Positions 14,592 to 41,556 of a stretch of 64,000 nt of DNA are shown here, piece after piece. The DNA is taken from positions 38,068,001-38,132,000 of the forward strand of contig CM060731.1 in assembly GCA_030704615.1 (NCBI GenBank), in the 5' to 3' direction. This DNA is from Takakia lepidozioides. Lineage: Eukaryota > Plantae > Bryophyta. The first letter of the stretch is position 1; each line of letters opens with the position of its first letter. Position numbers and translations under genes: made by a program. Under the pieces are notes generated by a model. That model did not search any database. It had not been told where the DNA came from and saw only the letters and a list, made by a program, of their open reading frames with translations.

Positions 14592-17500
14592 GGGGGTGCA
14601 CTCCAGCCAATACGTACCAGCCACGTGCGTGCACAGGAGGGGGTATTTTAAACCCATCCATGTACAACATTATACATATAGAGGGGGGTTTATATCACCT
14701 TAAATATAATCTTACAGGAGGGGGTTATAGAATTTTAGGAGTAGTCTAGTGGTAAGGGCGTAGAATGTGTCGTGACGCACCGCGGGATCAAATCGCGATG
14801 CAATGTTGTTTTGCTTTTCTTTTTTTTCTTTGCTCCCAGCGATCTGTCTCCCGCGGGCTCTCTTTTCCCTCCTCCCCCGCACCCCTTCCGTGTCAGCATA
14901 GTCTTAGCAGGCCGAGAGAGAGAGATTATAATGTTCATAGGGATACTGAATTATGTTCTTTGAAGAGTCTTCAGGTAGAGGTAGCACTTACACAAGGCTT
15001 AAGGCTGCTTGAGAAGTGGGAGCATGCTACGCTGCACTTGACACAGTGGACCTGGCCCATGTTTGAGCTTCATACTTGGGTAGGGAAGCCCTTCAAGGAT
15101 GACATGTTGTTGATGTTTCATACTTGACTTGATGACATCCTCAAAATATGAGAGGTTAGTACTGTGTTACACTAGCATCTAGGAGTTAACCGAAGTCGGG
15201 GTTGACTCTCTGTTCAGTCAGATATCATTATGCACACAATAGGTGAGAACTCATTCATGCAGACCTGTTCTTGCTGACTAGAGCTAGGTTTTGCATCAGA
15301 AGAGTACATGGTGACATCTGACATGCCCTCATCTTAGTTAGATTGCAGCGGCTTACGTAGCATGTCCTTCCTTCAGTGCTTGAGCCTTGTTGCTACAAAG
15401 GGTGGAAAATCAAAATGAACAATCTGTTACAAACAATGTTAGCGCAGGTACATGAAAGGCTGCTGATGCTAGTCTCTGCAAATGAGATGCGCTCATTGGC
15501 TGAGCGTGTGTTCCAACCTTTCTCTACTGTGAGACCTTTTGAATGCACGTCGACTGCTGAGAGTCTGTGGAAGGTTGCTTTCTCCCACCTGTTCACTCTA
15601 AGGGCTCATAGTCTTGTTTCAGTGGTAATAAGTGGTATTGACTGAAAAGACTTTCTCATTCTAGTCGATTTAACAAAATATGTAGATCTTTATCTGCTTT
15701 CTCAACGAGGTATAGGTGAAACCCTAAAAGCACATACATGTGCTGAAAGATGCATGCAAAGGGTTCGATAATTTTGGTTTGGCATCAGAGCAGCATTCTA
15801 GGACGCCCAATATTTACAGATAGATTCATGTTGTATGTCTGATGTAGGCTGCTTTGGTGGAGTATGAGGAAAAGATGCTTCCAATAGAGGGGAAGATAGC
15901 CTTAAAACTACGGGAACTCTTTTGCTCTTCTCTCCTACCTTCCTTTGCAGCATCTGTCAGAGAAAATGCAAACAACTCTGTTTCAGCTATGGCTCGGCCT
16001 CATCAGGTGGCAAACTTCTTTCTTCTGGTTATAATGCGTTCCTTAGACCATCTGGTGTTTGCAAATTTCTCTTTAGCTTTCAGGAATGTCCCAATTGCAC
16101 TGACTTTATATGCAAAGTTTCCCTCTGTTGGGGAACCTTAGTAAATGAAGGCTAGTAAGAAGATAAAGAGGTCGATGTATCCTTGCACAACCACATCTTT
16201 TTAAATGGTATGTGTTTTGTTGTGTTGATAGTTGTGTGTGTACTGCGCAGGTTTAAAGAGCTCTTTGGAAAACCTCTTGTGGTGCAGTGTCTGGCAAGTG
16301 AAGGACATAGGCTCATCTCACTAATTCAAAGGTGATTGGCAGAGAGTCACAATTTTTTGTTGTTGTTTGATGCCCTTTGTTGTTCTTTGTCCGTCTCCTG
16401 TAGAGGAAATCAAAGTCGCAAGCTCCTCAATCAAAAGCATTCCTACTTTGTGTTGTGTGAAGGAGGAACCATGGAATCATTGATATGCACCAGTGTCAGC
16501 ATGCAGGCATGTTGAGGCTCTGAGGAGTACATTTGAAGAGAAGTGTGTTGTGTTCAGCACCCATAATAGAAAGAATGAATTTGATGTGGCCTTGCCCCAC
16601 TGCCATGCGGGGATAGTTGTTGGAAGTAGTAGAGTCGTCCCTATTTTTTCATGTTGAATTCTGCAAGTTAGATCGTTGGTGGATCTATGGTGGTTTTGGA
16701 GTGATTTTGTGCTCCCTGTACCTTCTTCTTCAACCTATTTCAGTCTGTTTTGCCCTCTCATCATTAGGGTTTAGGGTGTTTGCTGGAAGAACTTCATGCC
16801 ATCAGTGTCAGCTGCTAGTAGCAAGGCTGAGGATGTATTCATGATTTGTCCACAGGCAGGGATAGCTAAGGACCAGGGATAGAGGTCCAGATTCATCCAA
16901 GAGGGCCGGATTTCAAACACAAGTTTCTTTCTGCTTCTCTGTGGATCAATAGCTACAAGCAATCGCGCGGGTAGATGGTCAATTGGAAACATCAGCGGCA
17001 ACAGTGCAATTGATAGAACAAGGCAATGCTAATGAAGGTACATTCTTCAACACATTTCAGCCTGTTTTTCCCTGTTATCAGAGTTTTTCCATGTTTTTGC
17101 CTGAAGGAGCAGGGATAGAGTGTGGGTCTAGATTCATCCACGAGGGTTGGACTTCAAGCTCCAGATTACCTTGATTCCATGTGGGTCAGTAGCTACAAGA
17201 AACCTACATGGGTAGATGGTAAACTAAAGGCAGCTATTGCAGCGGCACAGATGATAAGTTCAGGCACCTCAACCATGACCACAGCTTTTGAAAGAGGATC
17301 AAGAGATGGAGTCCACAATGCCTCTTCTGACATTTCTGGGCATGTGAAGATACTTTGTGCGGCAGACAGCCTGACAGAGGCTCTACAGATTCTAAACCAA
17401 TGAGGCATTTTAGCAGATTCAGATATGTATGTTTGTCTCTTGCTTAAGTGCATCACTGTCACCAACCAGGGCAAAGGTGGGGCCACTCCTTGGATTAAAA

Positions 17501-17682
17501 CGTATAAATATGTTGGCTTCCTTTAGCATGCAAAGGAAAGAAGGAAAAGACATAAACAGTTCGGTTTTCCTTCAGACCTATGTTTGATCCAATCTCAGAT
17601 CTTTACCTTTGCAATCCTTACCTTTGGAGATGTACTTCAATGATATGTGGGCAGAGGGAGGATGGTTTCCAGTGGGAAGCTA
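14592..17682 (+). repeat. Left inverted arm (~3.09 kb)
   Basis: Colinear reverse-complement match to 33055-36159 with only scattered substitutions and small indels. Paired ORFs in the track confirm it (15376+/35106-, 16617+/33895-, 17193-/33251+). Confidence 0.95.
14975..16331 (+). pseudogene. DYNC2H1: Captured genomic fragment (at least 4 exons with introns) of cytoplasmic dynein-2 heavy chain (retrograde IFT motor), N-terminal tail region
   Basis: AG/GT-bounded exons 14975-15154, 15448-15573, 15848-16006 and 16251-16331 read VEVALTQGLRLLEKWE..LTQWTWP..HTWVGKPF..(R)LDDILKI(R)E / VHERLL..RVFQPFSTVRPF..ESLWK / AALVEYEEKMLPIEGKIALKLRELF..PHQ / FKELFGKPLV..LASE. This is colinear with the DYNC2H1/DHC1b tail as I recall it (QW..LTGQVW..RLEEVLAIRTIHEK..RVFEPF..PLWKAAVSQYEK..EQKIAGKL..YKELVKRP). 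Two in-frame TGA stops. Confidence 0.8.
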
Positions 17683-18519
17683 CACTAGAAGCATTCGTGT
17701 CTTTTTCGAATCGACTGCACGTCCAAAACCACTGAGGGAACAACTTTGAGATGTTTGTTACTACTGCACAATCGTAACGGATAAATTCACATTTCTAATG
17801 GCGGATAGAAGTTGCATCAATGACTCCGCAGTCGGCACAATATTCGCGGCGATTTAATTCAATTACGTAAATTGTTTTTTTTTTTAAACAGCAATTACAA
17901 GTGGTTTTAAGCACTAGAGAACGTCTCTTAACAACTAGGCATTCATTGCACACCCTATTCAAAAATGGAATTTTTATAAGTGCTCCACATGGCTCATGAC
18001 GTGGAATATTTTAATGTATTTTAGGGCTTGTGTGGCTCGTAGAGATTGTTCTAATCGTCGGATGTAAAATGATCTAAGGGTGGAAGAGTAACTTTGTCCT
18101 TTGCCTGAATTTGTCTAAGTGTTGGGAGAGGGATGGAGGCTTGAGAGAGAGACGAACAAGTGATGCGAGAAGGACGAAGACCAAATCGAGGCCCATGTCC
18201 TGTTGTTGCAAGCGTTTATGGCGTCAAGGGCGCATTATGTGCAAATGTGGGCTCTTGGCTCCCCTTTGTACCATGATTTGGTATTCTTCCTGATGATCAC
18301 AAGGTTCTTGGGGGAATCAGCTTGGTCTTAGCAACCCATATTTTAATCTCTGCCCGCTCAGCTGCACCGTGGTGGTTCTTATGAACCAATCCCACATTAC
18401 CTGACTAGAGATACAAGCAGCACGCACAAGAGGTCTTCTTGGGTTCATGGTCAGTCTAATCCGCAATGGGTCATGACACAAGGTAGAGGACAATGTGGTG
18501 AGGGCACCTTCTTCTTCGA

Positions 18520-19349
18520 GCTATTTCAGCCTGTTTTGCCGAGATGTAGTGTCGTGGAGTGCGATGCTTGCAGGGTATGCACAGCAGGGACGTGGGATGG
18601 AGGCTTTGGAGACCTATGAAGTTGCGAAGGGAGAGTTTGATAACATGGCTGAACAAGATGTTGTCTCAAGGAACACGCTGAATCTCGCAAGATATGGCCA
18701 GCATGTGTGCGGGATGAGGGCATTGGAGACATATGAGCAAATGTTGAGAAGAGGTGCAGCCTGACCGGGTCACGTTCATTTGTGTTTGCAATGCATGTGC
18801 AAACCTGGCAGCCCTGGAGACTTGGTAAAGGGCAAAGAGGTCCATCGTGACATTGTCAAAGCTGGAACTGTACCAGATGTAACAATACCTTGTCGACATG
18901 TATGCCAAACGTGGGAGCATTCCCTTGTGAACAAGGAGTGTTTAACAATATGGCTGAGCGAAATGTGGTGTGGTGGAACGTGATGATCGCAGGACATGCA
19001 CAACATGGGCGGGGATTGCGGGTTTTGGAGACCTATGAGCAAATGATGTGGGTCTAGGGGGTGAAGCCCGAGCACATTACGTTTGTTTGTGTTTGTAGTG
19101 CATGTGCGAGCCTGTTGGAGAAGGGCAAAGAGGTCCATGGTTGCATCGTCAAAGCTGGAATTGTGGTAGATGTCATTCTGAACATGAATACCCTTCTAGA
19201 TAGGGAGTGTTCAACAATATGGCTGAGCGAAATGTGGTGTCGTGGAAAGTGATGATCACAGGACATGCACAACATGGGCGGGGATTGCAGGTTTTGGAGA
19301 CCTATGAGCAGTTGATGTGGGAGGGGGTGAAGTCCGACCACATTACGTT
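18520..19349 (+). pseudogene. Degenerate, tandemly duplicated PLS-class pentatricopeptide-repeat (PPR) gene fragments
   Basis: DVVSWSAMLAGYAQQGRGMEALETYE, NMAERNVVSWKVMITGHAQHGRGLQVLETYEQLMWEGVKSDHITF and KPEHITFVCVCSACASLLEKGKEVHGCIVKAG. Many frameshifts. Confidence 0.85.
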
Positions 19350-21956
19350 CAGAGAGTTCAAATGCCTCTCCACCATGACCTTGCTTAGCTAACCATGCCT
19401 TGCTGATGTTGTTGTCTTGCACTTGAGTTGTTTTTGGACACTGGCTGGAACATCCACAAGGCGGCTCTGCTCGAGAGAGAAATCAGCTTGAATGCAGGGG
19501 CAGATTTTGAGATCACAATCGCCACTCAGAACGTTGTTCTTTGCACCGGCATGGCATGTCAGCATGCATATCAGCCCAAACTCATTACTCCGTGAGCCTT
19601 CCACTGCCGGAGTGTGCCCATTCAAGCTAGATCTTCGAAACGCAGGGATGGAACGGGGTTTTGAAACCAGCATTGCCTAACTGGATACCCAATTCAACTC
19701 CGCATCTTGGTCCATTAATCTGCTGCACATTGTGAAGTTTTTTGCCCGTTCACCGCAAGTTGAATAAGGAGTATTCTTAAAACACGGGTACTCATAATCT
19801 GAAAATGGCTCCAGCTTATGTTGCTTGAGTGCGAATATGAGTGTTGGTTGGCTTGGCAGCTTTACATCTGGTCCATCCCACTCGATATGATGAACAGGTT
19901 CAGCTTGACTTCTCTCACACAAAAGACGCTGCCAAGATGGGGTTCGCCGCCCTAGATGACTTCCCGTCGTTGTTTTGGGCTGCAACATACAATTAATCTG
20001 GCCCATGGCGAGGGGCCTTGCCTTCCACCAATCATCTATAAGTCCTATGAAACTGTTTTTGTGGCAGTTTGTAAGCAGTGGGCAGCGATGGTGGGCTGTT
20101 GTAGGATTTGATGAACTCAATGTCGTGTACTGACAACAACCCCTCATCTCTTATGCAAGCATTCAACAAGCCAAGTTGACTGCAGAGCATATTGAGCCCC
20201 CCACGTTTCTAGTTGCCTAATGTTCTTCATCTCCTGGGCAGAGCATTTTCCAAGGTCTCCATCTGTGATGACACACTATCTTCTCATGTGGTTCAGCTTC
20301 TGGTCTTGCGCTTGTTTGCACCACCCCAATGAAGGGCAGTTCCCACCTGCTTGATTCTCTCTATATGGTTGTCTTGGGTCTTGGCAGGGTTTCCCACAAC
20401 CGCCTTTCCTTTTCAGACTGCCAGTCATCAGCCTCGTTCTCCAATGCTTCACTTTCTTCCCAAGTGAAGTGCTCTCCTCTTTTATGCTTCAACGTCCCTG
20501 CAGGTGTCTTTTCCTTCATCTCCCGTGGTGCTTTCGAATGAATGAGCACTGATTTACATCTGTTGGCAACACTTACGGTGTCCCTTTCCTTGCATGCCAC
20601 TGCAGGCCCGCATTGACTTTCTTGGCAGGGAAGTCTCCTCCTTCTCCCTCATTTTCTGGCTCTGTTGGTGCCCCACTCACCATGCTATCAGGGAGTCTTC
20701 TTGGCAAAGTCTCCCACGAGCTCCCATCAATTTCAGGCATCAGGTTTTCTACCCTGCCCTTCCACTTTTCATAAGCGAGGTGCATGTCTTCCTCCCTTTC
20801 ACTCTTCAGCGTCTCAGGCAGATTTTTCTTCATGCGATTGCTGCTCCCATACTTCCAGTCCTTGTTTAATTTTCTCCAGCCATCACCCTCAGATTTGACA
20901 AGGTATTGTTGCCCTTCCTTGTGTCTTTCCTCACTCCCAGCTGCTGGTTTTATCCGAGATTCACCTCTCATCCTTGCCTGGGGTTTTGCTTGCCAAACAG
21001 CCCTTGTGTGGGGAACTTCAACGAAAGGCAACATCTCATTCTCAGCTCCTGTCTTTGTACCTCTTTGCAGCAGTCCAGCCTCGGGTGCCTCACTTTCTGA
21101 TTGTTGGGTTGCATTCTTCGCCGCCAACCTTTGACAAGAAAGTGTGCTCCATCTTCCTCATCTCCTACTGGTTCCCTTGATGCTTCACCTCATATGTCTT
21201 CCTCCTCATGTTTTAGCAGCAGTTCCCATGCTTGAATTGCTACTTTTCCTCGTAGTTGATCTTGTGCTTTCCTTTTTCTCCGTAGCCTAATCAACAGTTT
21301 TGTCTTGGCAGCTCCCTTGCCATGAGTGCCTTGTCTCACTGCATCTCCCTTGGCTGCCCACCATCCTTGGAGTCTTTCTTGCACTATTCTGACCCTCGTT
21401 GGCATGCACTTTGCTGTGATGCCCCACATGTATTTGCTGCTCCCTTTAATCATCAACATAGTGCTCTAGAGCCAGTTCCTCATTGTTGACCAATTGACCT
21501 TCTCAGCCCTTGGACCCCATTTTCCCTTCTCCCATGTTGCCTCGTCTTTCTGCTTCATCGTTTGCTTTACTAGCACGATGTTGCTTCTTCCCTACAGCTC
21601 ATCATGTGTTGTGGCTCTTTCCCATGTTGCACTCACTCCCATCATACGTTGTGCAGTTGATAAGACGGAGATGAGTTGATGCAGGATAGGGGGAGGGCTT
21701 GCTGGTGTATGTTGTCTGATAGGCCCTATGCACAGAGTCAAAGCTGGAAGTCAGCCTTGCAAGGACCCAAGTGAGAGAAGTCTGGTGGGGTAGCATCTTG
21801 GGGGATGGCAGTTAGGGCAATGTGTGTCTAGGGCAATATATGTCATAGCAGCGGGTGATGTGCTGCCAATTTTGAGGATAGAGACAGCCTGTAAGCTGTA
21901 GATTTGTATAAGTGGTTTCTTCTGACACATATTGCTCCCAGTTTGCCACAACCAGT
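19350..21956 (-). mobile_element. 2.6-kb insertion with a decayed, unidentified long reading frame (possibly retroelement gag-like)
   Basis: Splits a PPR motif exactly (CATTACGTT at 19341-19349, TGTTTGCATTTGTAGTGC resuming at 21957). Carries a chain of minus-strand ORFs (21190-21459, 20573-21127, 20361-20600, 19677-20147, 19389-19673). Confidence 0.45.
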
Positions 21957-22102
21957 TGTTTGCATTTGTAGTGCATGTGCAAGCCTGCTGGGGAAGGGCA
22001 AAGAGGTCCATGGTTGCATCGTCAAAGCTGGAATTGTGGCAAATGTCATTCTGAACAATACCCTTGTGGACAGGGAGTGTTCAACAATATGGCTGAGCGA
22101 AG
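21957..22102 (+). pseudogene. Continuation of the interrupted PPR fragment
   Basis: VCICSACASLLGKGKEVHGCIVKAGIVANVILNNTLVD, nearly identical to 19085-19230. Confidence 0.8.
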
Positions 22103-22109
22103 GATAGAG

Positions 22110-23200
22110 TGTAATGACTGCTAATGAAGGCACCTTCTTCAATTTCACCTTGTTTTCCCCTCTTATCAGAATCGCTTCTAATTATTCATGTCTGAATTCT
22201 GCAAGTTAGCTGGTTGAGTGAAGCTTTGATAGTTTGGAGTGACTTTGACATGATTCTGCCAATGTGACAACAGGAAAATATCATAAACAGGTAACACAGA
22301 CGAGGAGAAGTTGTGGAATGAATATTTTTCTGACCCCAGTCAATGGTGGGACAATCGAGGCAAGAAGGTGAATGTTTGTTGGATTATAGAGAGTAGCAGA
22401 TGCAATTGAGCGTAGGAACTAGTGTGATAAGTTGAGTTGGGTGCTTCCTAGAACAAGTCTAGGCTGTCATCGTCAACTGCTAGCAACAAGGCAAGGTTGT
22501 ATGCATGATTTGTGCGAGGCATGGATAGTTGAAGGAGCAAGGATAGAGTGTGGGTGCAGATTCACCCAAGAGGGCCAGACTTCAAGCTCCAGATTAACTA
22601 TGAAGCTACAAGAAACCTGCATGGGTAGATGGTCAACTGGCAGCAACAGCACAATTGATAAAATCAGACATTGTTAATGAAGGCATCTTCTTCAGCACAT
22701 TTCACCCTGTTTTTCCCTCTTATTAGAATCGGTCCAAAATTTCCATGTTGAATTATGCAAGTTAACTGGTTGAGTGAATCTAGTTTGGAGTGACTTTGAC
22801 ATGATACTGCTATGTGACAACAGGAAAGTATCAAAAAACAAGTAACAGACATGAGGAGAAGCTGTGGAATGAATACTTTTCTACCCCCAGTCAATGATGG
22901 GACAACCGAGGCAAAAAGGTGAATGCCTGCTACATTTCAGAGAGTAGCAGACGCAATTGAGCATATGAACTAGTGTGATAAGCTGAGTTGGGTGTTTCCT
23001 AGAACAAATGTAGGTTGTCATTGTCAGCTACTAGCAGCAAGGCAAGGATGAATGCATGATTTGTGCAGGGGCATGGATAGTTGAAGGAGCAGGGATAGAG
23101 TGTGGTCCAGATTCATCCTAGAGGCCAAATTTCAAGCACAAGATTTACCTATGATTCCCTGTGGATCAATAACTACAAGAAACCTCCATGGGTAGATGGT
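22110..23200 (+). repeat. Diverged tandem copies of an ~550-bp repeat family (R) also present in both arms and, inverted, at 30440-31170
   Basis: Shared motifs GCTAATGAAGG..CTTCTTCAA..CATTTCA..CTGTTTTTCCC, GGAGCAGGGATAGAGTGTGG, CTACAAGAAACCT.CATGGGTAGATGGTC and TTTTCTGACCCCAGTCAATG.TGGGACAA. Confidence 0.8.
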
Positions 23201-23422
23201 CTATTCCGTGGAACTCACTGAAGTCTTGCATTATGAGGATCAGAACTGCTTGACTTGCACGAGGCCTTGACCCTTAGGCAATCCCCAGAGCAGCAGTAGC
23301 TTTTGGGCTGCTTTTTTACTTTGTGTTTTTCATTTTGTCCTATAAGCTCTTTGAGCTTTCCGCAGATGTAATAAAGTACCATTTTGTTTCATTTCATTCA
23401 TTTTCATTTCATTTTGTTTCAT
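23200..23422 (+). mobile_element. 5'-truncated 3' end of LINE family A
   Basis: Encodes the decayed C-terminus (..LHYEDQNC..HEALTLRQS), then the TAAGCTCtttGAGCTT stem-loop and a (CATTT)n tail, matching 36810-37010 (-). Confidence 0.8.
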
Positions 23423-23429
23423 GGCAACT

Positions 23430-24774
23430 CTTTCATCGTTTGTGCATTTCTAATGCATGATTAGTTGGTAAGCCATCTGTCAAGCCTGAGGAAATAGTCT
23501 TTCCTGGATACATTAGAAGAGTTCTTTGAGGACGATTATTCAGAGGAAGCCAAGATACAGACAGCTGCTCTGCACCTCCGTGATGCCGCCAAGCTATGGT
23601 GGTCGCGCCAGAAACAGGAATGCCGTGAACACAAGAAACCACCTGTGGTAGTTGGGCTATGTTTAAGACACTATTCTTAGCCCACTACCTACCTGACGAC
23701 TATGCACACAAGATGAAAATGGAACTGTTCAGGTTGAAACATGAAACCTTGAGTGTTGGTGAATTCAAAACTAGATTTGAAACCCACGCAAGCTACTTTC
23801 CTTCCCTGAGTGAAGAAGACAGGGTTGATTTCTTTGTGGATGGCCTGAATGATTCCCTTACAGAGGATTGTGACTCAGGCTCGTGAATTTAAGCCAGTTG
23901 CAACGCCATCTTGGCAATCAACTAAGAAAAAGGGGAACTGGAAAAGGTTCAAGCCCTATAACAAGAGGCAAGATGGCTCGAATAATCGAAGCCATCGCAG
24001 GTAGAAGCCCCTGCACGGCTCAGTGCCAAGGAACGGGAAGAGCATAGGCGCAAAGGATTGTGTTTCATCTGCCATGAGTGGGGTCACAGGGCTAGAGAAT
24101 AGACAACCTGAACCTGGCTCAAGAAGATGTGCAGCCTTCCCACATTCTGCTACCCAACGGCGGTGTGGAGTCTATGCACAGACATCTGTCAGACGTGCCA
24201 ATGATCCTGCAAGGTGTATACACGACAACAAATTTTGAGGTTTGGGATGGAGCTCGGTACGACTGCATCCTCGGTATGCAATGGCTGGATCCAGTGGATG
24301 CGGTGGTAGCCTGCAAGCTCGAAACGGTCAGTGGGACTTTGCCAAATGGAGAGGCATTTAATCTTAAAGGTACCAGAGCCCTTCCTAATGTCCCAGTCTT
24401 GTCAGCCTTGCAGATAAAGAGGATTAAGTGGTTGGGTAAAAGAGAATGAACTAACATTGAATTACCCCTCATTTTCTGTCATTGAGGACAATGACCTGCC
24501 TTTGGGAGGGGGAGCTTGTTAGGTGCCTATGGAGCCCGGACTGGAACAGCGGACCAGCCCATCAGAGAAGAACGTAACCGCTAAACCTTGGGGGGCTGAT
24601 CTTTACGGACACCTGCAGGTGACAAGAACTGGGCAAGCTGGTGGTTTCAAGAAGCTAGGGATTGGTGAAGAAGATGTGGTAGAGTGCGACAAGAAAAAGG
24701 ATGGTTGTAGCGCGGCCTTATGGAACCTGAATTGAGGAGAAGGACAGATGATTTGAAGAGAGGGCCTGAGATCT
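23430..24774 (+). mobile_element. Internally deleted Ty3/Gypsy remnant: gag, zinc knuckle, protease, PPT and start of 3' LTR
   Basis: Gag (SWAMFKTLFLAHYLPDD..LFRLKH..SVGEFKTRF..FVDGL), zinc knuckle (RRKGLCFICHEWGH) and protease (YDCILGMQWL). PPT GGGAGGGGGAG at 24504-24514 is followed by TGTTAGG at 24517. Confidence 0.85.
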
Positions 24775-25441
24775 GAATAGGATGTGTGATATATGCATAG
24801 AGGAGATGAGAACATAGCATGGTGTGGCGGTTGGGTGAACCGGAGGAGTAATCCGGTACTGTGCTGTCAGGAATAGATAAGGTAGAGATGAGCGGTAGGG
24901 TTTCTTGCTGACTGAAATCAGAACGTGATGCCTTCTCTACCTAAAGTGTACAAGCTGTGAATAGAGTTCTAGTCAGGTTTATACTAAGCTTGAACTGACT
25001 AGAATCCCTATGATAGTGAACAGAGGAGTGCGTTGATTTTTCCCCGTTGAATATAATCAAGGGGACCGCTCCTTCTTTTGAGCTTTTGGAATGAGATCAA
25101 CTGCATGTGGCTTCATGTTATAGAATTGAGAACTAGTTGGATGGAAGTGGTGCTATTGTTGAGAACTGGGCAGAATGTGTAGAAGTACTCCTTTGCTCAC
25201 TATCATAGGGATTCTAGTCAGTTCAAGCTTAGTATAAACCTGACTAGAACTCTATTCATAGCTTGTACACTTTAGGTAGAGAAGGCATCACGTTCTGATT
25301 TCAGTCAGCAAGAAACCCTACTGCTCATCTCTACCTTATCTATTCATGACAGCACAGTACCGGATTACTCCTCCGGTCCACCCAACCGCCACACCATGCT
25401 ATGTTCTCATCTCCTCTATGCATATATCACACATCCTATTC
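24775..25441. repeat. Near-perfect hairpin: 255-bp arms (24775-25029 / 25187-25441), 157-bp loop
   Basis: Direct reverse-complement comparison shows about 6 mismatches and no indels by eye. Confidence 0.95.
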
Positions 25442-25601
25442 TGTAAATATACAAAAATTTACAATTTTTAAAAAGTACCCTATGTATATTCTCATTTTCC
25501 ATCATTAAAAATAACCCTCCAATATGTATATGTATGTTTTTATATTATATCGAATTTATTCATTTAAAACATAATAAAATCTAACAAATTAATTAAAAAA
25601 A

Positions 25602-28600
25602 TTATTTGCCTTTGATAAAGTTGTCAAAGACTTTTCGGTCATTTGCATCAAGTACATATATGTTTGACTTGACATTGTACTTTAAACATGCTAACGTGAT
25701 AATGGAATCCAAATCAACCATCATGTTATCCGTCAAATCGTACGTATAGACCCCTCCTCGAGTTTTTTGGTACCATGCTAACCCAATCTCCATATGAGAA
25801 GGATGCTCCAATAAATCAACAGAATCCCTACATTCTACAAACCGCTTATTGATTTTCTTCCGCATTCTTTGAACCCTGCCCAAATACCAAGTGCCTTTGG
25901 TTGCTCCTCTGCAGGTTTTCCCTGGTCTGCCTTTCCTGTTTGTAGTTTGGATCGCAGTCTCCTCATCAACAAAAAATACAGCACAATCCGAACCCAATCC
26001 CAAGCTCGTGGCTTTGTTGCTGGTAGTTGGTTTGTTTTCTCGGCAAAACAACATCGATGCACTTCTTACTCGTGTCAATCTATCCTTGGATAGAGTAGGG
26101 TTGCCATTGAGTTGGTTAACCAAAGTGCTTTTGAATATGGTCTTTCCGTCTACTTTGACAAATGGAACCACCACCTTCGATCCATCTTTCTCTTGTTCAA
26201 ACTCATCAATGACAGCATCCAGAGTATGTCTCAATTCACTTTGAATAAGTACATCTTCCGCATGATCATCCAAAGGTTGGCTCAAAACATCCTCCATTGA
26301 ATTCGAAGGCCCGCACACCAATTCATCTTCCACGACCTCATTTTGAATATGTGTGTCTGCATTAAGAGGACAAATATAATCTATGGCATCGACATCATCA
26401 CCCTCCTCTTCCATGCTTTTGAATAGCTCGGCCTCCATTTGTCTCTCAATTGTCCATGGCTCATTCCACCAATCCAAGTTTGTCGCTTTGTTTGGTTTCA
26501 TCCCAAGTTTATGGCATAAAAGTTGCGCTTCTAGAAATCCAGTTTTCAAAGCCTCCACAATGCAATCATCCGATTGGACAGTAGAAAAGTCGGACAAATC
26601 AGCAAGGGGGATACCTGGCTTCTTCTCCAAAGAAAACCAAATGTGTTCTTGTTTCTTGTGAGCTCTTGAGAACTTGGGTCCTTTTGGATTCACCTCGAAC
26701 TCGGATATGCGTGTTAATGCTCCCGCACTCTCAATCAAATCACACCCGTCATATGTCCTCTCATTCCGTAACATACCTCCCACTTTGCTGAAGAATATTT
26801 CACACACATCTGAACCAACAAGGCTCAAAGGAACTTGCACATGATTAAACTTATCCTTGAACAATTTGATAAGTAGAACCACGTAGTGGCATGAAATTTG
26901 TAAATCCAAGTATGCTTCCCTGCTAATGAAGAAGGATTTCAGATTATACACCTCGTGGTGGAATAACCACAACTTCCACAATCTGAAAAAAAACGATACC
27001 TTCGCAGCAGATTGCACCCTCTCACACAATGACATGTGAGGAGACAAAAAAATGTCGATGTAGCATGAAATGATGTATAGGTAAAATTCAGTACATTTGG
27101 TCCTCTCCCTTCGATGATTCACAGTTGATTGTAACTCCCTCAAACAAGCTTGCACCTTCCGAGATGCCAGTCGTTGAGCTGCTGCCCAATTCTGTCGATC
27201 TTCTCTTTTGATATCACATTCCCGAAGTCCATGCTTGTCCACTGAAAATGAATGGTAGACCAATAACACATGATTCAATGTAGCAACCTCATCACCCAAC
27301 ACCAAAGTCCGTGATGCACTGTCCAAGGGATTTACCAATTTTTTCCCATTGTGGATGAAGTCCTGATCATGGAGTCCGTTGCACACTGGACCTGTAAACA
27401 ACCATCCTTCCCAAGGGATGCAAAATCTACTTCCAGCCCCATTGGCATAATCTTCTAACATCACTTTTCTCCTCCTACTATCTCCGTCTGAAGCATGCCC
27501 AATTATAGGCCCAACCACGTCCCTCACATATTTGTCCCACAACTGTCTCACCACTTCCCATTGTGATCTCACAAAATTGTTGTCAAATCTATTGCAAGTG
27601 AGCTGGATTACCAATACCAATCGAGGTAATTGTACATGTAGAGGATTTGCTATCAACACTCTGGCGTAATGGGCAACCACATTGTTTTTGAATGCCTCCA
27701 CAATATGTTCGTACCCTGATTCCCCTTCTCCCACTTGCACCACAAAATTTGAAATACATACATGGTTGTCTTGAAGCCCACAGAACCCGAGAAGGGTGTC
27801 ATCCCTAGCAATCCAACGTACCAATCGCTTCACAACAGTTTCATCTTCGGCCACCATCACTGGGATGCTTCCCATTGGAATATTTGCATCTTCCATCACA
27901 TCTCTGTAAATTCCAGCCACATGCTGAAATATATCATCCATTTCTCCCGCTCTATACTTCAAACCTTTCCTCAAAGACCGTCTTGTAGTATCAATAGAAG
28001 GACCCCCCACATTTGAAGCCAAAAAATGATGCAATCTCGAACCCCCCCAAAGCTGCACAGTCTCAAACATTGTTTTTGTGCTAGTACCATACCTCTTCCC
28101 TTGTGGAGACCTGTCAATATTCTTGCCCATATCAACAATAAAATCCCACAAACTTTCTTTTCCTTCAAAATCCCCCTCCTATGTGCATCAACAATATCAC
28201 GACAAAATTTGAGAACATCTCCTCTTTCAATTGCCTCAATCCCAGACTCCTTCAAACTCCTACATCGCACAGACAAGGATGCCACTTTGGTCCTGGCCTC
28301 CCACAATTTGAACCTCAACTGCCTCAACTCCTGTCTGTTTTTGTAAACTTGTTTGACAATCTCGACATTTCCAAGATATGACAACCTTCTTCCCTTGCCA
28401 GTATCTCTCTCCCCTCTATATTCCATGGCACCTCTCTCTCTATATACCCTCATTCTGAAGTCATTTTCCAAGGGAATGGAAGAACATGCTGAACACCTCA
28501 AGTTTGGAAATGGCTCCCCATCCAATGACACTCTAAAACAATCCGCGTGCCGAAACGTACCAACAACCTTATGCTCTTGATTGTTTAGAGTGATGGTTGC

Positions 28601-29995
28601 ATGTGTCAACGGCTCGACATACCACTTCTTTCCTCCCTTGCTATCTTGAAGGAATGGTTTCAGACTTATTCTCTTGTGGTTGTACTCCCACCATTCATCC
28701 CATAGGCCCCAACACAAACTGTTCTTCCTTTGTTGCATTGGGACCTTCGCTGTAATTGTCAATCCTCAATCAGATCTGCCGTTGGGCAGCGTCAACACAA
28801 GTGTATGGAGTTTGTGACGAGGATGCTCCCATTGTTGATGCCACAATTGGATTGTCAAGTGGTGGGGACGGCAACACAGGTTGACTGACCAAGAAAGAGC
28901 TTAGATCCCGTTGCTTTACATCTTTGGCAATCATAGGCTTTGGAGGCCTTCCTCTCTTTTTGCACAGTCCTTCACTACTTCCAACCTTCTGGCAAATCTC
29001 TGCATCGACATGAGTTTTTCCCTTCACATGCTCTGTCAAAGAAGATTGCAAAGAACCTGTCCTTGGAAACAAGAGTAGCCACTTCGAATCAAGTGCGCAC
29101 TTAATCCTTATGGAACCCAACTGCGAATAGTCTCCAATTGTGGCTTCCACAATCTCAAATCTGTTTCCAGGATTGTCCTCACAAAACCGAGCGACTTCCT
29201 CTAATGCCTCCTTCACCCTGTTCTTCTTTGCATCTAATGCTTCATCTGCATTTACAGGGCTGATGACACATTGTGATGAACCCTTCCCATGACGCCTCTC
29301 ATAGGCTATGCGATGCCCCTCACTCCTCAAATGAGATCTCATAAAGTTTGCACATGCATCATATGGTTTGTTTTTCCCAGACCGTGCATAAACATCCTCA
29401 CACTCAACACACCATATGTGGAACATTGTTTGTCCTTGTTGATCCTTTGTCATGAGCTCAAACTTGTCACATCGTCCTTCTGCAGAGATTTTCCTTTCAA
29501 CGGCTCTAATCTCTTTCTGCCATTTTTGAATATCGCTGGATGTAGCCAATGTGCTGCACAATCTACCATATCTCTGTTGAAGTGCATGCTCATGTGCATG
29601 GTCTTCATTTCCACCATCGCCAGCAAAGGGTGTATCAGGGTCCATCCTCATCTTTTTAGACACTGGTGCCGGGTCCTCGCCTGGTCTGTCCTCATGCAAG
29701 ATCGTAGAACCACTGGAAGATAGAGGTCTTTTCAATCCTTGGTCCCCATCATTTTGGTCTGAAATCTTAATGTGTACAGTATCCCCTTTCAGAACCATCC
29801 TCTCTTCCTGCTTGGCTGAAAGGACACTACCCCCCATGGAAAGGAAATGAAATTTTCCTGAGACAAGCTCATCACTAGAATTTCTGCTCGGATGCATTTG
29901 TATGTGACACCTTGCATAGTGAACACAGAACCAAGCCTGTTTGGTGATGCATCTCCTCCAACGAGCAGGACTTTTACTTCCAACTCTTCTTCCAT
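25602..29995 (-). mobile_element. P-element/THAP9/Galileo-superfamily DDE transposase gene, mildly decayed (~1,460 codons in 4 ORF pieces; catalytic 849-aa part uninterrupted)
   Basis: Motifs in P-type order: AEDETVVK (D1), GHASDGD (D2), QDFIHNGKKLVNPL (DxxH), EDRQNWAAAQRL and GSDVCEIFFSKV (E). Upstream pieces are joined by apparent frameshifts at ~28150, ~28770 and ~29875. ATG at 29995 is preceded by a TTTTGCAG acceptor. Confidence 0.75.
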
Positions 29996-30439
29996 GATGA
30001 GTTCACCTGCAAAATGCAATGAAAACATTTCAAATCAGACCTTGATAGACCAATAACAAAGCACCCGGGTTGGAAGGTTCCAAAGTCCTGTTTTATACAG
30101 CCCTATAGGCTGTCCAAGCAGGGACTACGTTGATAAGAGGATGAAATGTGTACAGAAGCAAGTACCTGATTGATGAGTTTGATGCTGCTAATTCTTGCTG
30201 CTGCTATTGACCAAGTGCTGCTACTTCCACTGCTGGTAGCCCTCTTGGGTGATCCTGAACCCACAGTCCATCCTTGCATCAGCGGCTAGCCCTCCCTCCA
30301 CACTAACATATTTAAATACAAAGTTATGTCAAACTCCCTACGATGTTGCATGAAGAAAGCTCACCTTGTTGACAATATTGTCCCACCGCTGTGGATCATA
30401 TTTATAGAACTCCTGCCAGCGCTGTTCCTTGCTCCAAAT

Positions 30440-31170
30440 CTGGCCCTCTTGGATGATTTTGCACCCACGATCCTCTCCCTGCATCAACAGCTACCCCTCC
30501 CTCCACACTAACAATGCGTACATCATGCCTCTGCAGCTGCTACAGTGGCTTCCAGTTGACCATCTACCCATGCAGGTTTCTTGTAGCTATCCTTCCACAT
30601 GGAATCATAGGTAATCTGGAGCTTGGAATCCGGCCATCTGGAAATTTAGGGACGACTCTGATAACAGGGAAAAACAGGCTGAAATGTGTTGAAGAAGGTA
30701 CCTTCATTAGCAGTCCCTTGTTCTATCAATTGCGCTGCTGCCGCCGCTATTTCCAGTTGACCATCTCCTACATTGTCCCACCACTGACTGGGGTCAGAAA
30801 AGTATTCATTCCTTGAAAGCTTCTCTCCATCTCTGTTATCTTTTTTTAGGTACTGTCATGCTGCCACCTCGGCAGTAACTTGCAAAGTCACTCCAAAGCA
30901 CCGCAGATCCACCCAACGAGCTAACTTACAGAATTCAATACATATGCTTCAGGGCTGAGTCTGATGAGAGGGAAAAACAGGCTGAAACAGGTCAAACCAG
31001 AAGGTGCCCTCAGGCTGAAATGTGTTGAAGAAGGTACCTTCATCAGCAGTGCCTTGCTCTATCAATTGCGCTGCTGCCGCTGCTGTTTCCAGTTGACCAT
31101 CCACCCACATTGTCCCACCATTGACTGGGGTCAGAAAAGTGTCTCATTCCAAAGCTTCTCTTCATCTCTG
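30440..31170 (-). repeat. Repeat family R copies, inverted relative to 22110-23200
   Basis: CTGATAACAGGGAAAAACAGGCTGAAATGTGTTGAAGAAGGTACCTTCATTAGC and TTGTCCCACCA.TGACTGGGGTCAGAAAAGT each occur twice. They match 33655-33770 directly. Confidence 0.8.
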
Positions 31171-33051
31171 TGGTGCTATTGCAGGGTGACTTCAATGCCC
31201 AAGTGGGCAAAGGGCTCCATCAGGACGATATCATTGGGTCTTCTGGTGAGGACGAGCTGAATTCTAATGGCAGACGGTTAATTAACTGTCTGGAAGAGCT
31301 TCAGCTTTTGACCTTGAATAACAAGACAAGAGGTGACCAAGTGCAGTGGACTCGTGAGAAATCCCAAACTGGGGAACGTTCCATTGTGGACTATATCATA
31401 ATGGACAAAAATTTGTTCCCCCAGTGTGCCAATGTGTTGATCGACAGAACTGATATTGGTACCTCTGACCACTTCCTGGTTTGGACTGAGATCAAAAGGT
31501 GTTTTCCCAACACCAGAGTAGAAGAGATTCTCAAGGACCTGGACCTGGATCCGCAAGTCTTGACCCTGCTGGATAAATCCGACTTAGAGGCTGTAGTGTC
31601 CAAAGCCATGTCTGTTGCCATGAGATTGTCTGATGAAAATGAAGTTAGGCAGAAAACTTCCCTGAACTTGTTTCTAGTCAGTGACATGGGGGAGGACATC
31701 TTGGATGACCTCAAGGGTCCACCCACTCTCGGCACTAGACTGAAATTTAAACTCAGGGAAGGAAGCCTACCTTTGAACAGCAAACAGAAGCAGAGAGGAA
31801 AGGGGGAGTGCACTTCCCATTGTGTGGGCAATCTGAAGACAATATTCATTTTCTGATACACTGTCCGGGGTTCTCTCACCAAAGAGACGCTCTCTTCAAA
31901 TCTATCAAGGGAATTGTGCATGAATTGTCCTCCAATTGTAATTGGGATGCACATATCCAGAAAGTTGTTCAAACTGGCAAGGGCAAAGCTCTGGGGCTCA
32001 CTAAATTTTTCCACTGCAGAGGGGTCAACTCTGAGGTTAAGAAAACCATGCTTTCTCGCGTTATTAGACCTGCCTTGGAGTACGGATCTGCTATATGGGT
32101 TGATAACTCCAACCAGGCTAAGTCTCTAGAATCCATTCAAGTGGGGGTGCTTAAGGAGTGTATGTCAGCATGCTCCAAAACAAATGTGGCTGTTCGGGGT
32201 GAGTTTGGCATTCCATCCTTAAGCTCCCGACGAGATGAATTCAAGGTCAGATGGTGGGGTCAGCTGCAACATATGCCCAACACCAGATATCCTAAGTTAA
32301 TCGACTCTATATCTTGGAAACAGGACCGCCCTGTCAAACAGGCGAAGCCCTGGCAAAAGAGAGTAGAAAAGATTCTCAAGGACCTGGACCTGGATCCGCA
32401 AGTCTTGACCCTGCTGGATAAATCTGACTTAGAGGCTGTAGTGTCTGAAACCATGTCTGTTGCCATGAGATTGTCTGATGAAAATGAAGTTAGGCAGAGA
32501 ACTTCCCTGAACTTGTTCCAGTCAGTGACATGGGGGTGGACATCTTGGATGACCTCAAGGGTCTACCCACTCTCGGCACTAGACTGAAATTTAAACTCAG
32601 GGCAGGAAGCCTACCTTTGAACAACAAACAGAAGCAGAGAGGAAAGGGAGAGTGCAATTGTCCGTTGTGTGGGCAACCTGAAGACAATATTCATTTTCTG
32701 ATACACTGTCCGGGGTTCTCTCACCAAAGAGACGCTCTCTTCAATTCTATCAAGGGAATTGTGCCTGTACCCATGTTTACCAACTTTGAAAGTCTTGAGG
32801 CTGAGCCAAAAGCCCAGGCCCTCCTGAGGCCTAGTTTTTGGGCAAATCACACACAGCAGATTGATGCTTGTGTGAAGGGATTTCTAGAGGATATCTGGAA
32901 AACCCGGATTAATTCTATATATGAAGGTAAGTCTTACTACCAACGTCAGCCCCTGACAGAGGTAGGTTTTGTCCCTTTTGTTCCCGCTCAAACTGGGCGC
33001 GGGGTCAAAGTCCACAAGGCTACGGCAAACAACGTCTTATGAGTACAATCT
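31170..33051 (+). mobile_element. Rearranged copy of LINE family B (endonuclease fragment, duplicated C-terminus, RT core deleted)
   Basis: APE motifs GDFNA, IVDYI and SDHFLV (31170-31500). 31513-31918 matches 60123-60528, then 31928-33051 matches 59689-60814. Confidence 0.9.
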
Positions 33052-33054
33052 AAC

Positions 33055-36000
33055 TAGCTTCCCACTGGAAACCATCCTCCCTCTGCCCACATATCATTGA
33101 AGTACATCTCCAAAGGTAAGGATTGCAAAGGTAAGGATCTGAGATTGGATCAAACATAGGTCTGAAGGAAAACCGAACTGTTTATGTCTTTTCCTTCTCT
33201 CCTTTGCATGCTAAAGGAAGCCAACATATTTATACGTTTTAATCCAAGGAGTGGCCCCACCTTTGCCCTGGTTGGTGACAGTGATGCACTTAAGCAAGAG
33301 ACAAACATACATATCTGAATCTGCTAAAATGCCTCATTGGTTTAGAATCTGTAGAGCCTCTGTCAGGCTGTCTGCCGCACAAAGTATCTTCACATGCCCA
33401 GAAATGTCAGAAGAGGCATTGTGGACTCCCTCTCTTGATCCTCTTTCAGAAGCTGTGGTCATGGTTGAGGTGCCTGATTTTATCATCTGTGCCGCTGCAA
33501 TAGCTCCTTTAGTTTACCATCTACCCATGTAGGTTTCTTGTAGCTACTGACCCACATGGAATCAAGGTAATCTGGAGCTTGAAGTCCAACCCTCGTGGAT
33601 GAATCTGGACCCACACTCTATCCTTGCTCCTTGTGAGGGCAAAAACATGGAAAAACTCTGATAACAGGGAAAAACAGGCTGAAATGTGTTGAAGAATGTA
33701 CCTTCATTAGCATCGCCTTGTTCTATCAATTGCACTGCTGCCGCTGATGTTTCCAGTTGACCATCTACCCGCACGATTGCTTGTAGCTATTGATCCACAG
33801 GGAAGCAGAAAGAAACTTGTGTTTGAAATCCGGCCCTCTTGGATGAATCTGGACCTCTATCCCTGGTCCTCAGCTATCCCTGCCTCTGGACAAATCATGA
33901 ATACATCCTCAGCCTTGCTACTAGCAGCTGACACTGGTGGCATGAAGTTCTTCCAGCAAACACCCTAAACCCTAATGATGAGAGGGCAAACCAGACTGAA
34001 ATAGGTTGAAGAAGAAGGTACAGGGAGCACAAAATCACTCCAAAACCACCATAGATCCACCAACGAGCTAACTTGCAGAATTCAACATGAAAAAATAGGG
34101 ACGACTCTACTACTTCCAACAACTATCCCCGCATGGCAGTGGGGCAAGGCCACATCAAATTCATTCTTTCTATTATGGGTGCTGAACACAACACACTTCT
34201 CTTCAAATGTACTCCTCAGAGCCTCAACATGCCTGCATGCTGACACTGGTGCATATCAATGATTCCATGGTTCCTCCTTCACACAACACAAAGTAGGAAT
34301 GCTTCTGATTGAGGAGCTTGCGACTTTGATTTCCTCTACAGGAGACGGACAAAGAACAACAAAGGGCATCAAACAACAACAAAAAATTGTGACTCTCTGC
34401 CAATCACCTTTGAATTAGTGAGAGGAGCCTATGTCCTTCACTTGCCAGACACTGCACCACAAGAGGTTTTCCAAAGAGCTCTTTAAACCTGCGCAGTTCT
34501 CCCATCACCTGCACACAGCTGTCAGCACAACAAAACACATACCATTTAAAAAGATGTGGTTGTGCAAGGATACACCGACCTCTTTATCTTCTTACTAGCC
34601 TTCATTTACCAAGGTTCCCCAACAGAGGGAAACTTTGCATATAAAGTCAGTGCAATTGGGACATTCCTGAAAGCTAAAGAGAAATTTGCAAACACCAGAT
34701 GGTCTAAGGAACGCATTATAACCAGAAGAAAAGAAGTTTGCCACCTGATGAGGCCGAGCCATAGCTGAAACAAAGTTGTTTGCATTTTCTCTGACAGATG
34801 TTGCAAAGGAAGGTAGGAGAGAAGAGCAAAAGAGTTCCCGCAGTTTTAAGGCTATCTTCCCCTCTATTGGAAGCATCTTTTCCTCATACTCCACCAAAGC
34901 AGCCTACATCAGACATACAACATGAATCTATCTGTAAATATTGGGCGTCCTAGAATGCTGCTCTGATGCCAAACCAAAATTATCGAACCCTTTGCATGCA
35001 TCTTTCAGCACATGTATCTGCTTTTAGGGTTTCACCTATACCTCGTTGAGAAAGCAGATAAAGATCTACATATTTTGTTAAATCGACTAGAATGAGAAAG
35101 TCTTTTCAGTCAATACCACTTGTTACCACTGAAACAAGACTATGAGCCCTTAGAGTGAACAGGTGGGAGAAAGCAACCTTCCACAGACTCTCAGCAGTCG
35201 ACGTGCATTCAAAAGGTCTCACAGTAGAGAAAGGTTGGAACACACGCTCAGCCAGTGAGCGCATCTCATTTGCAGAGACCAGCATCAGCAGCCTTTCATG
35301 TACCTGCACTAACATTGTTCGTAACAGATTGTTCATTTTGATTTTCCACCCTTTGTAGCAACAAGGCTCAAGCACTGAAGGAAGGACATGCTACGTAAGC
35401 CACTGCAATCTAACTAAGATGAGGGCATGTCAGATGTCACCATGTACTCTTCTGATGCAAAACCTAGCTCTAGTCAGCAAGAACAGGTCTGCATGAATGA
35501 GTTCTCATCTATTGTGTGCATAATGATATCTGACTGAACAGAGAGTCAACCCCGACTTCGGTTTACTCCTAGATGCTAGTGTAACACAGTACTAACCTCT
35601 CGTATTTTGAGGATGTCATCAAGTCGAGTATGAAACATCAACAACATGTCATCCTTGAAGGGCTTCCCTACCCAAGTATGAAGCTCAAACATGGGCCAGG
35701 TCAACTATGTCAAGTGCAGCGTAGCATGCTCCCACTTCTCAAGCAGCCTTAAGCCTTGTGTAAGTGCTACCTCTACCTGAAGACTCTTCAAAGAACAGAA
35801 TTCAGTATCCCTATGAACATTATAATCTCTCTCTCTCGGCCTGCTAAGACCATGCTGACACGGAAGGGGTGCGGGGGAGGAGGGAAAAGAGAGCCCGCGG
35901 GAGACAGATCGCGGGGAGAAAAGAAAAAAAATAAAAGCAAAACAAAATTGCATCGCGATTTGATCGCGCGGTGCGTCACGACACATTCTACACCCTTACC

Positions 36001-36159
36001 ACTAGACTACTCCTAAAATTCTATAACCCCCTCCTGTAAGATTATATTTAAGGTGATATAAACCCCCCTCTATATGTATAATGTTGTACATGGAGGGGTT
36101 TAAAATACCCCCTCCTGTGCACGCACGTGGCTGGTACATATTGGCTGGAGTGCACCCCC
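33055..36159 (-). repeat. Right inverted arm (~3.1 kb)
   Basis: Reverse complement of 14592-17682. Confidence 0.95.
34408..35776 (-). pseudogene. DYNC2H1: Second captured dynein-2 heavy-chain fragment (right arm)
   Basis: Mirror of 14975-16331. It retains the two CGA (Arg) codons that are TGA in the left arm, but has its own CAG>TAG at 35705. Confidence 0.8.
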
Positions 36160-36460
36160 CAGGGTCTCCTCCTAGATGCATTTTGTTTGTAAGATGGAGA
36201 TTTGGTCCCGAAGCGTTTGAACATCAGCACTCCTTGTGGAATAGTGACGCAAATGAGAGGCTTGTTGAGAGACCGGGGCAGGAAGAAGAAGCAGAGGGGA
36301 ATTAGGTCAACGTGAGGAGACGGGTAGTCTACCTCGTCGGCAGCCGTCCTTTGGCGTTTGGATGTCATGGTGTGGCGGAGGTGGCGCTAGAGCGCCAACG
36401 CCTGTGAGCGCAGCGCCGACGCGCGAGCGCAAACATGCTGCCGCACACGTGAGAGAGAGA

Positions 36461-39800: not shown

Positions 39801-41484
39801 GTTGAAATCTCCAACCAAGAAAATGTCCGTTTGTGGGGTACGGAGACGGGCCATATCGTCTTCCAATGGAACATATGGTGAATCTGTTCGAATATGTAGG
39901 CCGCTGTGCGGAGATGCCGCCGGAGCAAAATAACATCCCGCCAGCAGGATGTTGTAGCCTTTGATGTGACACCAAATGTACCTTGCCAATGGGTCTTTGT
40001 ATGGGAAAGAGATAAGTGGGAGAAGCCAGTCAGCAAAGTAACAAGCCACACCTCCAGATCCTTTGAGACCTGTACGTGGACGAATCACTGACTGAAAGCT
40101 ATACCCGAGAATAAAAGGGGGGTCCTTTCCTTCATACGCATGAGTTTCCAAAAGAAAAAGAATATCACACTTGGAAAGAATATCTAGAAGCCCTTGAGGG
40201 TGGCTCCACAACGAGCCATTACAGTTCCATGAGCCAATGTGTAGATGTGAGCGTGCGTTGGTCTCATGGTGCCCCAACCCCTATTTAGAGCTAGAGGGGC
40301 GACGTTCGTGCTCCCGGACAATTACCCTCCCATCTCGGTACACGACATAGTGCCCTTGAGCTCGAGCTTGCTTAACCTGCAAGAGTTGCGCCCGCATGGC
40401 GTTGTATTGCAAAGGGGTGAAGTCATCGTTGAGGTACATACCCTGACCTCTGAATTGAGGCCTCTGCCTGAGGACTCTATCCCGAGCACCCTTGTCCTTG
40501 AATTTAATGAAGAGGACTTTGTGCTCTGAAGATCCTGCACGCCAAGCCCTTTCAATGCCACTCGCGCCCCGTGGGAGAGCAAGGTTTTGCTAAATAAAGC
40601 TGGTGGCAGCGTCAAGAGGGTCCCCCTCAGCAAGGCCCCCTAGGTTCCCAGTGACCCTGATGTTAAGGGCTTTGAAAGCCCGTTGTTGTTCCTCTCGCAA
40701 GGTTGCCGAGACTGTCTCCTCCAGAGAGTGAGGACTGTTGTTGGATGTGCTCCCCTTAACTATATTAGCCCAGGATGAGGCCTCTGCCTTGTGAGCTTGG
40801 AGCTCCCGAGCAATTGTAGATGTCGCAGTTTTGTGTGTTTCCAGCTCTTTGCTAAGGGATTCCACCTGCAGGTGGATGCTTGCTGTGAGGGGATCTGGGA
40901 GGCTCTTCTCTGTGAAGGTCTTCACTTCGCCTTCAAGTTTTGAAAGACGCGTATGTGTGGATTTGTCATTGAGATGTTTCGCCAGACCTTGAAGTTTGCT
41001 AGTGCACTCCTGAAGAGAGGCCCGCAAAACGTTATCCTAAACTCGCATATTCTTCTCCAAGTCTGTGTATCTGTCTGTCATGCGCTTCTGCCAATCTTTG
41101 TCCAAGGAATCCATGCGCTTTTCCCAATTTTTGTTAAGGGAAGCCATCCGCGTCTCCCAGTCTTTGTCTAGAGAAGCCAACCGCTCCTCCGAGTCATTGT
41201 CACGGGCAGCGCGCACTTGCTGCAGAATCTCCTCCGAGATGCATTTCGTTTGGAAGATGGAGATGTGGTCCCGAAGCGTTTGAACATCACCACTCCTTGT
41301 GGAGTACTGACGCAAATGAGAGGCTTGATGAGAGACAGGGGCAGGAAGAAGAAGCAGAGGGGAATCAGGTCGACGTGAGGGAGACGAGTAGTCTACCTCG
41401 TCGGCAGCCGTCCTTTGGCGTTTGGACGTCATGGAGTGGTGGGGATGGCGCTAGCGCGCCAACGCGCGAGCGCCGACGTGCTAC

Positions 41485-41552
<68 letters not shown>
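36810..41552 (-). mobile_element. Full-length, decayed non-LTR retrotransposon (LINE family A, RTE-X-like)
   Basis: ORF1 41432-40281 has a coiled coil and an L1-type C-terminus (YLNDDFTPLQ..ARAQG). ORF2 ~40277-36913 has APE motifs (SWNCNG, LLETH, GDFNARTG, VVDY, DSDH), RT motifs (QAGFR, FVDFHKAFDSV, GVKQGCPLSPTLF, LYADD) and a C-terminal RFRVGSHNLRIETGR..CPAC..ETEEHFFFYCPLY. (CATTT)n tail at 36810-36825; several frameshifts and stops. Confidence 0.92.
41489..41552. repeat. (GA)n microsatellite at LINE 5' end
   Basis: Directly visible. Confidence 0.95.

Positions 41553-41556
<4 letters not shown>

Follow-up and report, generated by a model that had tools for sequence, protein, structure and literature searches.

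The terminal inverted repeats of Galileo in Drosophila mojavensis range from 18 to 1,250 bp, and they lengthen through tandem repeats within them and by taking up neighbouring internal sequence as an inverted copy (PMC3573991). Chimeric Galileo copies have non-matching short flanking sequences that were ascribed to ectopic recombination (PMC3573991), and a statement in PMC10990002 that cites Delprat et al. 2009 attributes to Galileo inversions by ectopic recombination with exchanged duplications. BuT5, a miniature derivative of a divergent P element, has likewise been linked to inversions (PMC3698922), and the inverted-end repeats of Tetris and Foldback elements seed satellites (PMC4079207). 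The literature on P-type elements in bryophytes yielded nothing specific. Here we describe a 21.6-kb structure in 64,000 nucleotides of Takakia lepidozioides (assembly GCA_030704615.1, contig CM060731.1, positions 38,068,001 to 38,132,000, forward strand; hereafter the window), in which two inverted arms enclose a P-like transposase pseudogene. We are confident that the structure has the true ends of a transposon family around a dead gene of that same family, in a copy that is no longer pristine. A chimeric copy with a Galileo-like extended inverted repeat is the reading that we tentatively favour for how it arose.

Alignment of the two arms gave 97.7% identity over 3110 columns with 57 substitutions and a few indels, among them one of 11 nt and one of 3 nt, in agreement with the near-identical inverted arms of ~3.1 kb reported in a first-pass annotation of the window. 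The spacer between them measures 15,372 nt. The arms share their outer boundary to the nucleotide, as that annotation had also stated, and their inner boundary likewise; its outer positions of 14592 and 36159 needed correction, since the true ends are 4 nt further out, at 14588 and 36163. A 17-mer at the arm tips occurred twice in the window versus 0.15 occurrences expected by chance. The same 17-mer had 51 matches in a metagenome scan, none of which extended past the 17-mer, and these were attributed to chance. Coordinates of all features are collected in Table 1.

The transposase was searched as its separate open reading frames (ORFs), one of them an ORF of 849 aa at 25602-28151 on the minus strand. 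This ORF had no Pfam match even at an E value of 10, and so none to PF21787, PF21788, PF21789, or PF12017, and no PDB sequence match either as a single sequence or as a 32-sequence profile. We recovered 137 homologues from ferns (Adiantum), liverworts (Riccia, Calypogeia), a coral, and many other assemblies, and none of the 137 had a Pfam domain. An AlphaFold model built on the homologue alignment (predicted local distance difference test 80, predicted template modelling score 0.79) matched the Drosophila P element transposase strand-transfer complex (6pe2/6p5a) with a Foldseek E value of 6e-11, and VIA-align gave a Z score of 25.2 over 401-404 aligned residues at a root-mean-square deviation of 4.3. 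Other folds scored far lower, with Transib second at Z 11.3, RAG1 below 10, and Hermes below 9. Language-model neighbours of the transposase carried P-element Pfam families. Invariant alignment columns included a DG-D motif, a D-x-x-H-N-G-K-K motif, and the glutamate of an S-D-x-C-E-x-F-F-S motif, a pattern that, read by eye, resembles the P/hAT type. The earlier call of a P-type transposase therefore agrees with the predicted fold (Z 25.2 against 11.3 for the next). An N-terminal ORF of 375 aa had no THAP match; its cysteines and histidines have finger-like spacing, and it had a weak zinc-finger match (E 0.11).

Compared with an intronless relative of 1423 aa, the homology spanned 29561 to 25605 but switched among three frames, breaking near 28780-28884 and 28004-28175. 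Provided that the assembly is correct at the frame breaks, the transposase gene, split in this way, is a pseudogene.

We fetched the DNA around five relatives with transposases 41-48% identical to that of the window. The relatives are 6.8-9.2 kb long with short G-rich inverted ends of 13-18 nt. An exact 8-bp target duplication flanked three of them: one from a JGI metagenome (L003; 48% identity, 6,827 bp, 15-nt inverted ends), one on an ENA contig (L067; 45% identity, 6,752 bp, one tip sharing 12 nt with the tip in the window), and one on a Riccia sorocarpa chromosome (L066; 41% identity, 9,178 bp, 15-nt inverted ends). A fourth was present as two copies on one contig (L001/L002; ENA ERZ25073694 ctg132431; 41% identity, 7.74-kb block, ~13-nt G-rich inverted ends). 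These are inverted copies 49.7 kb apart and 99.86% identical (L001 9147-16887, L002 9148-16886), and their two 8-bp duplications are exchanged, a hallmark of inversion through ectopic recombination between copies, which shows that the family does recombine in this way. The fifth, found in several assemblies (L060-L063; ~43% identity, 8.07 kb), had the same tips with an unreadable duplication, with breaks at those tips against three different flanks on the left and two different ones on the right. Three further contigs, L064 and L065 (57-64% identity) and L059, were coding-only and without ends. In total, the G-rich ends were common to 5/5 relatives, with three clean 8-bp duplications and one exchanged pair. 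The predicted fold of the transposase and the 8-bp target duplications of the relatives together indicate that the family belongs to the P-element kind. The first-pass annotation had cautioned that the G-rich ends might be those of a MULE (Mutator-like element) or a PIF/Harbinger element with the transposase as a passenger; this concern falls away, as the five relatives with the same transposase carry the same G-rich ends.

The relatives and the window tips have in common an end module of ~65 nt, consisting of a 15-nt tip, ~20 nt, a conserved CCACGTGCG box, ~10 nt, and a G-run followed by TATTT. We built an end profile from six ends of three relatives, leaving out the ends in the window, and scored every window position on both strands. 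There were two significant matches, at 36100-36160 (minus strand, E 1e-6) and at 14592-14652 (plus strand, E 2e-5), and the next match had an E value of ~1. Profile position 1 falls on 14588 and 36163, the exact outer ends of the arms. The same profile recovered the paired ends of L066 and L067. No third family end was found in the 64-kb window on either strand, and the inner arm ends had neither the family tip nor the end module, with no significant match to the family end model. Since a profile made from relatives finds just the arm tips, sequence comparison has shown these tips to be the family's own ends, correctly inverted around the family's transposase gene.

The left tip cuts a Copia element, with the break inside the core domain of the integrase, beyond which follows RVT_2 (reverse transcriptase). 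The right tip cuts the ORF1 of a long interspersed nuclear element (LINE), of which the first ~68 codons remain; these match the ORF1 start of a nearby LINE at 36.9-41.6 kb. That the tips slice two unrelated retroelements had been noted in the first pass and holds. The 8-mers adjoining the tips, ACAAATCA on the left and GTCTCCTC on the right, had no match beyond chance. We looked for a target duplication at the locus, as the first pass had proposed, and found none in five pairings of outer and inner flanks with offsets allowed; no duplication flanks either single arm. The remainders of the Copia and of the LINE ORF1 were at no arm edge under any of three assumed histories: one simple insertion, a solo insertion of each arm, and inversion between the arms. 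Flanks that do not match and that are halves of unrelated retroelements imply that the two ends came from two integration events or were re-partnered later.

These flanks bear on the proposal of the first-pass annotation that this may be a cargo-carrying foldback element of 21.6 kb, taken here as one intact unit that inserted at this site. True family ends in the right orientation, with the right transposase enclosed, are what such an element would have. However, the 8-bp duplication is missing, although relatives have clean ones and divergence between the arms is just ~2%; each tip adjoins one half of a retroelement, the two being unrelated and their other halves found at no arm edge; the transposase reading frame is broken; and the relatives have short ends. 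We regard insertion of an intact giant element as very improbable. In its present form the 21.6-kb copy is no one-step insertion at this site and is not self-mobile.

Logan contigs of four public runs, three from one sample and one from another study, were placed on positions 13800-18400 (depths for run X1 in Table 1). The tip was ~170x deeper than the arm core, and a tandem sequence in the inner part of the arm, here called X, was 500-2000x deeper than the core, with a 449-nt tandem joint in other X copies. The arm is thus a four-part mosaic, made of a transposon end in high copy, a core in low copy, very abundant tandem X, and the start of a pentatricopeptide repeat (PPR) pseudogene. This mosaic fits a family with many short tip-only derivatives, and it speaks against a genome-wide family of solo 3-kb elements. 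The first pass had allowed that the arm sequence might occur genome-wide as solo elements of ~3 kb; we found a low-copy core and inner ends with no significant match to the end model. For the same reasons it is scarcely credible that each arm is an independent non-autonomous element of 3.1 kb and that two insertions made the pair. The identical extents of the arms would suit that explanation; against it, both the family tip and the end module are missing from the inner ends, no duplication surrounds either arm, and the core is low copy where the tip is high copy.

Over the arm core (15013-16635) the public contig matched neither arm and represents a third, ancestor-like version. It sides with the right arm at 16 sites plus indels and with the left arm at 7 sites, and it has one private change. 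At 18/19 transition sites the contig has the G or C state, so the changes private to each arm are mostly of the C-to-T type. These data also bear on whether the structure is an assembly chimera, in which a switch between family copies within the repeated arms joined different loci. The variants private to the arms were absent from the contigs of the four public runs, in which only the third version appeared, and none among the contigs listed spans an arm junction. Such contigs drop rare variants by design, however, which makes the absence of a variant weak evidence; there are short contigs that match the flanks exactly; and an arm divergence of 2.3% with 11-nt and 3-nt indels is unlike an artefact of collapse or duplication. 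An assembly chimera is on balance improbable.

In the reading that we favour, the 3.1-kb arms would be a terminal inverted repeat that has been extended: one of the end regions, together with its internal tandem array and PPR gene fragment, would have come to occupy both ends, as in Galileo. The copy would be chimeric, with ends from two integrations, one into the Copia integrase and one into the LINE ORF1, and recombination between family copies may have joined the two ends, which would explain the non-matching flanks. Retroelement and PPR debris would later have filled the interior as the transposase gene decayed. The inverted symmetry reaches past the arms at lower identity, as X arrays are present on both sides of the transposase in mutually inverted orientation.

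A different history would start from two short-ended copies inserted head to head, one into the Copia and one into the LINE, from which one internal deletion removed the inner ends and one of the transposase genes, leaving the same end region of each copy pointing outward; no long-armed element would ever have existed. Two integration events are required in any case, a single breakpoint accounts for the common inner boundary of the arms, the relatives have short ends, and the window holds just one transposase gene and two family ends. However, this fusion needs both the Copia 5' half and the body of the LINE to have been lost completely, the inverted X arrays flanking the transposase suggest pre-existing inverted subterminal regions, and the extension of inverted ends is common in Galileo (PMC3573991). 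We consider the head-to-head fusion somewhat unlikely, though it is the leading rival.

Several observations weigh against the chimeric copy with an extended inverted repeat. Inverted ends were short in every relative read, which makes the 3.1-kb arms a peculiarity of this copy or its subfamily instead of a family trait; among the window and the relatives read there was no second copy with the long-arm layout. The inner boundaries of the two arms, at the same nucleotide, adjoin two different repeats, which an extended inverted repeat alone does not explain. As a very abundant tandem sequence, X may flank the gene on both sides by coincidence. The arm junctions are known from the assembly, the public data being short contigs, and the ancestor-like contig implies either further ancestor-like core copies in the genome or assembly errors in a methylated repeat.

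Table 1 Features of the window. Positions count from the first nucleotide of the 64-kb window; depths are summed depths of Logan contigs in run X1.
Feature	Position	Strand	Details
Copia integrase and reverse transcriptase	12375-14587	-	Cut by left tip
Left inverted arm	14588-17682	+	3095 nt
Left transposon end	14588-14660	+	15-nt G-rich tip, conserved CCACGTGCG box, G-run/TATTT box; relatives-only profile E 2e-5
High-copy outer part of arm	14588-14877	+	Three G-run subterminal motifs
Depth, first arm bin	14570-14723		54,000
Depth	14724-14877		6,000
Depth	14878-15031		1,300
Low-copy arm core	15032-16571	+	No Pfam or Rfam match
Depth, arm core	15032-16571		313, single contig
Depth	16572-17495		150,000-630,000
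Very-high-copy tandem X units, then 5' fragment of PPR pseudogene	16627-17480	+	Inside arm
Depth	Last ~190 nt of arm		924
Depth	Inner flank		~25,000
PPR repeat fragments	18495-19350	+	Pfam E 6.5e-7; further piece 21904-22107
Inner X tandem array	22116-23205	+	Downstream of transposase
Gypsy gag and aspartic protease remnant	23659-24449	+	
Hairpin	24768-25443		255-nt arms, 98% complementary, 157-nt loop
P-like transposase pseudogene	25602-29897	-	Three frames versus 1423-aa relative
Inner X array	30239-31171	-	Upstream of transposase; inverted relative to 22116-23205, 75-87% identity
Internally deleted LINE, endonuclease and ORF2 tail	31170-33051	+	3' end 3 nt from inner end of right arm
Right inverted arm	33055-36163	-	3109 nt, 97.7% identical to left arm
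Right transposon end	36091-36163	-	Same module as left end; relatives-only profile E 1e-6
LINE ORF1 start	36164-36368	-	Cut by right tip
Seemingly complete LINE with ORF1, endonuclease, and reverse transcriptase	36913-41600	-	Same family as ORF1 stub at right tip

The parallel with Galileo drawn in the first pass is apt, as both extended inverted ends and chimeric copies are known there. Like Galileo, the structure has a P-type transposase between long, internally repetitive inverted ends, here arms of 3.1 kb with tandem X, and the exchanged-duplication pattern was seen here in the relative with two copies on one contig. It differs from Galileo in the length of its arms (3.1 kb versus at most ~1.25 kb), in the target duplications of its relatives (8 bp versus 7 bp), in having no detected THAP domain or Pfam match, and in its bryophyte-type host and G-rich tips; one such copy was seen. 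If they are indeed extended inverted ends, the arms would be the longest known to us in the P superfamily. With the P element (6p5a/6pe2) and THAP9 the predicted model has in common the fold of the catalytic core, including the insertion-domain region, over ~400 residues at Z 25.2, and like the P element the relatives make 8-bp target duplications. Unlike the P element and THAP9, the transposase matches no Pfam P-element family or PDB sequence, even by profile, and has a C-terminal beta-rich BAH-like domain; the tips in the window are also unlike the 31-bp P ends. With neither a match at the sequence level nor a detectable THAP domain, the family stands apart from canonical P, THAP9, and Galileo.

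Other systems resemble parts of the structure. As in BuT5, a short segment of the end far exceeds the coding element in abundance, with the miniature copies here inferred from depth only. As in Pack-MULEs, which belong to another superfamily, transposon ends enclose fragments of host PPR genes, one such fragment being inside each arm; these could be sequences that were already neighbours, or nested debris, instead of captured cargo. As in Tetris and Foldback elements, repeat units inside the arms, here X, are also extremely abundant elsewhere.

These results tie a transposase family missed by curated libraries to its DNA ends, namely the G-rich tips, the 65-nt module, and the 8-bp duplications. 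The elements read come from a bryophyte, a liverwort, and other assemblies, with related proteins in ferns and a coral, and the end module gives annotators a direct route to such elements and their miniature derivatives. Extension of the inverted ends, chimeric copies, and inversions that leave duplications exchanged, all traits of Drosophila Galileo, appear to occur again in a plant lineage within that superfamily and bear on how transposons reshape plant chromosomes. New here are the Galileo-like long arms, internal tandem repeats, and proposed chimeric state in a bryophyte-type plant, at over twice the length of Galileo ends. The 21.6-kb copy itself is dead and without evident function. A wider proposition is that land plants harbour a P-superfamily lineage with a Galileo-like foldback form, whose 3.1-kb inverted ends bear PPR fragments and seed an abundant tandem repeat, and whose long-armed copies are or were mobile and drive bryophyte inversions; we think this unlikely as a whole.

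Within the interior, Pfam and sequence comparison agree with the PPR, Gypsy, and LINE remnants, the hairpin, and the transposase listed in the first-pass annotation. The hairpin (~670 nt) lies ~160 nt 3' of the transposase stop codon and had no obvious target duplication. The internally deleted LINE contains an 845-nt internal tandem duplication (31515-31922 and 32360-32767, 95-96% identity), and no target duplication was found for the LINE adjoining the right arm. Another copy of the tail of the internally deleted LINE is at 59682-60816.

A Pfam search of the arm ORFs found no match. As judged by eye, the arms were rejected as a Helitron, with ends not consistently TC...CTRR in both copies, and as a solo long terminal repeat, with ends not consistently TG...CA in both copies. 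A segment at 14742-14810, mirrored in the right arm, looks tRNA-like by eye and has an A-box-like motif; ARAGORN and Rfam found nothing there. X, which runs into the PPR pseudogene start in the arm, could be a satellite akin to a PPR leader. In the transposase, the C-terminal beta-rich domain (residues ~712-839) of the predicted model resembles BAH chromatin readers at middling scores (EBS Z 7.1, DNMT1 BAH1 Z 6.7); it had no Pfam match and was scored within the whole-ORF model. Further along the window, an ORF at 54347-55309 on the minus strand has glycosyltransferase domains of the starch-synthase type and is probably an exon of a host gene.

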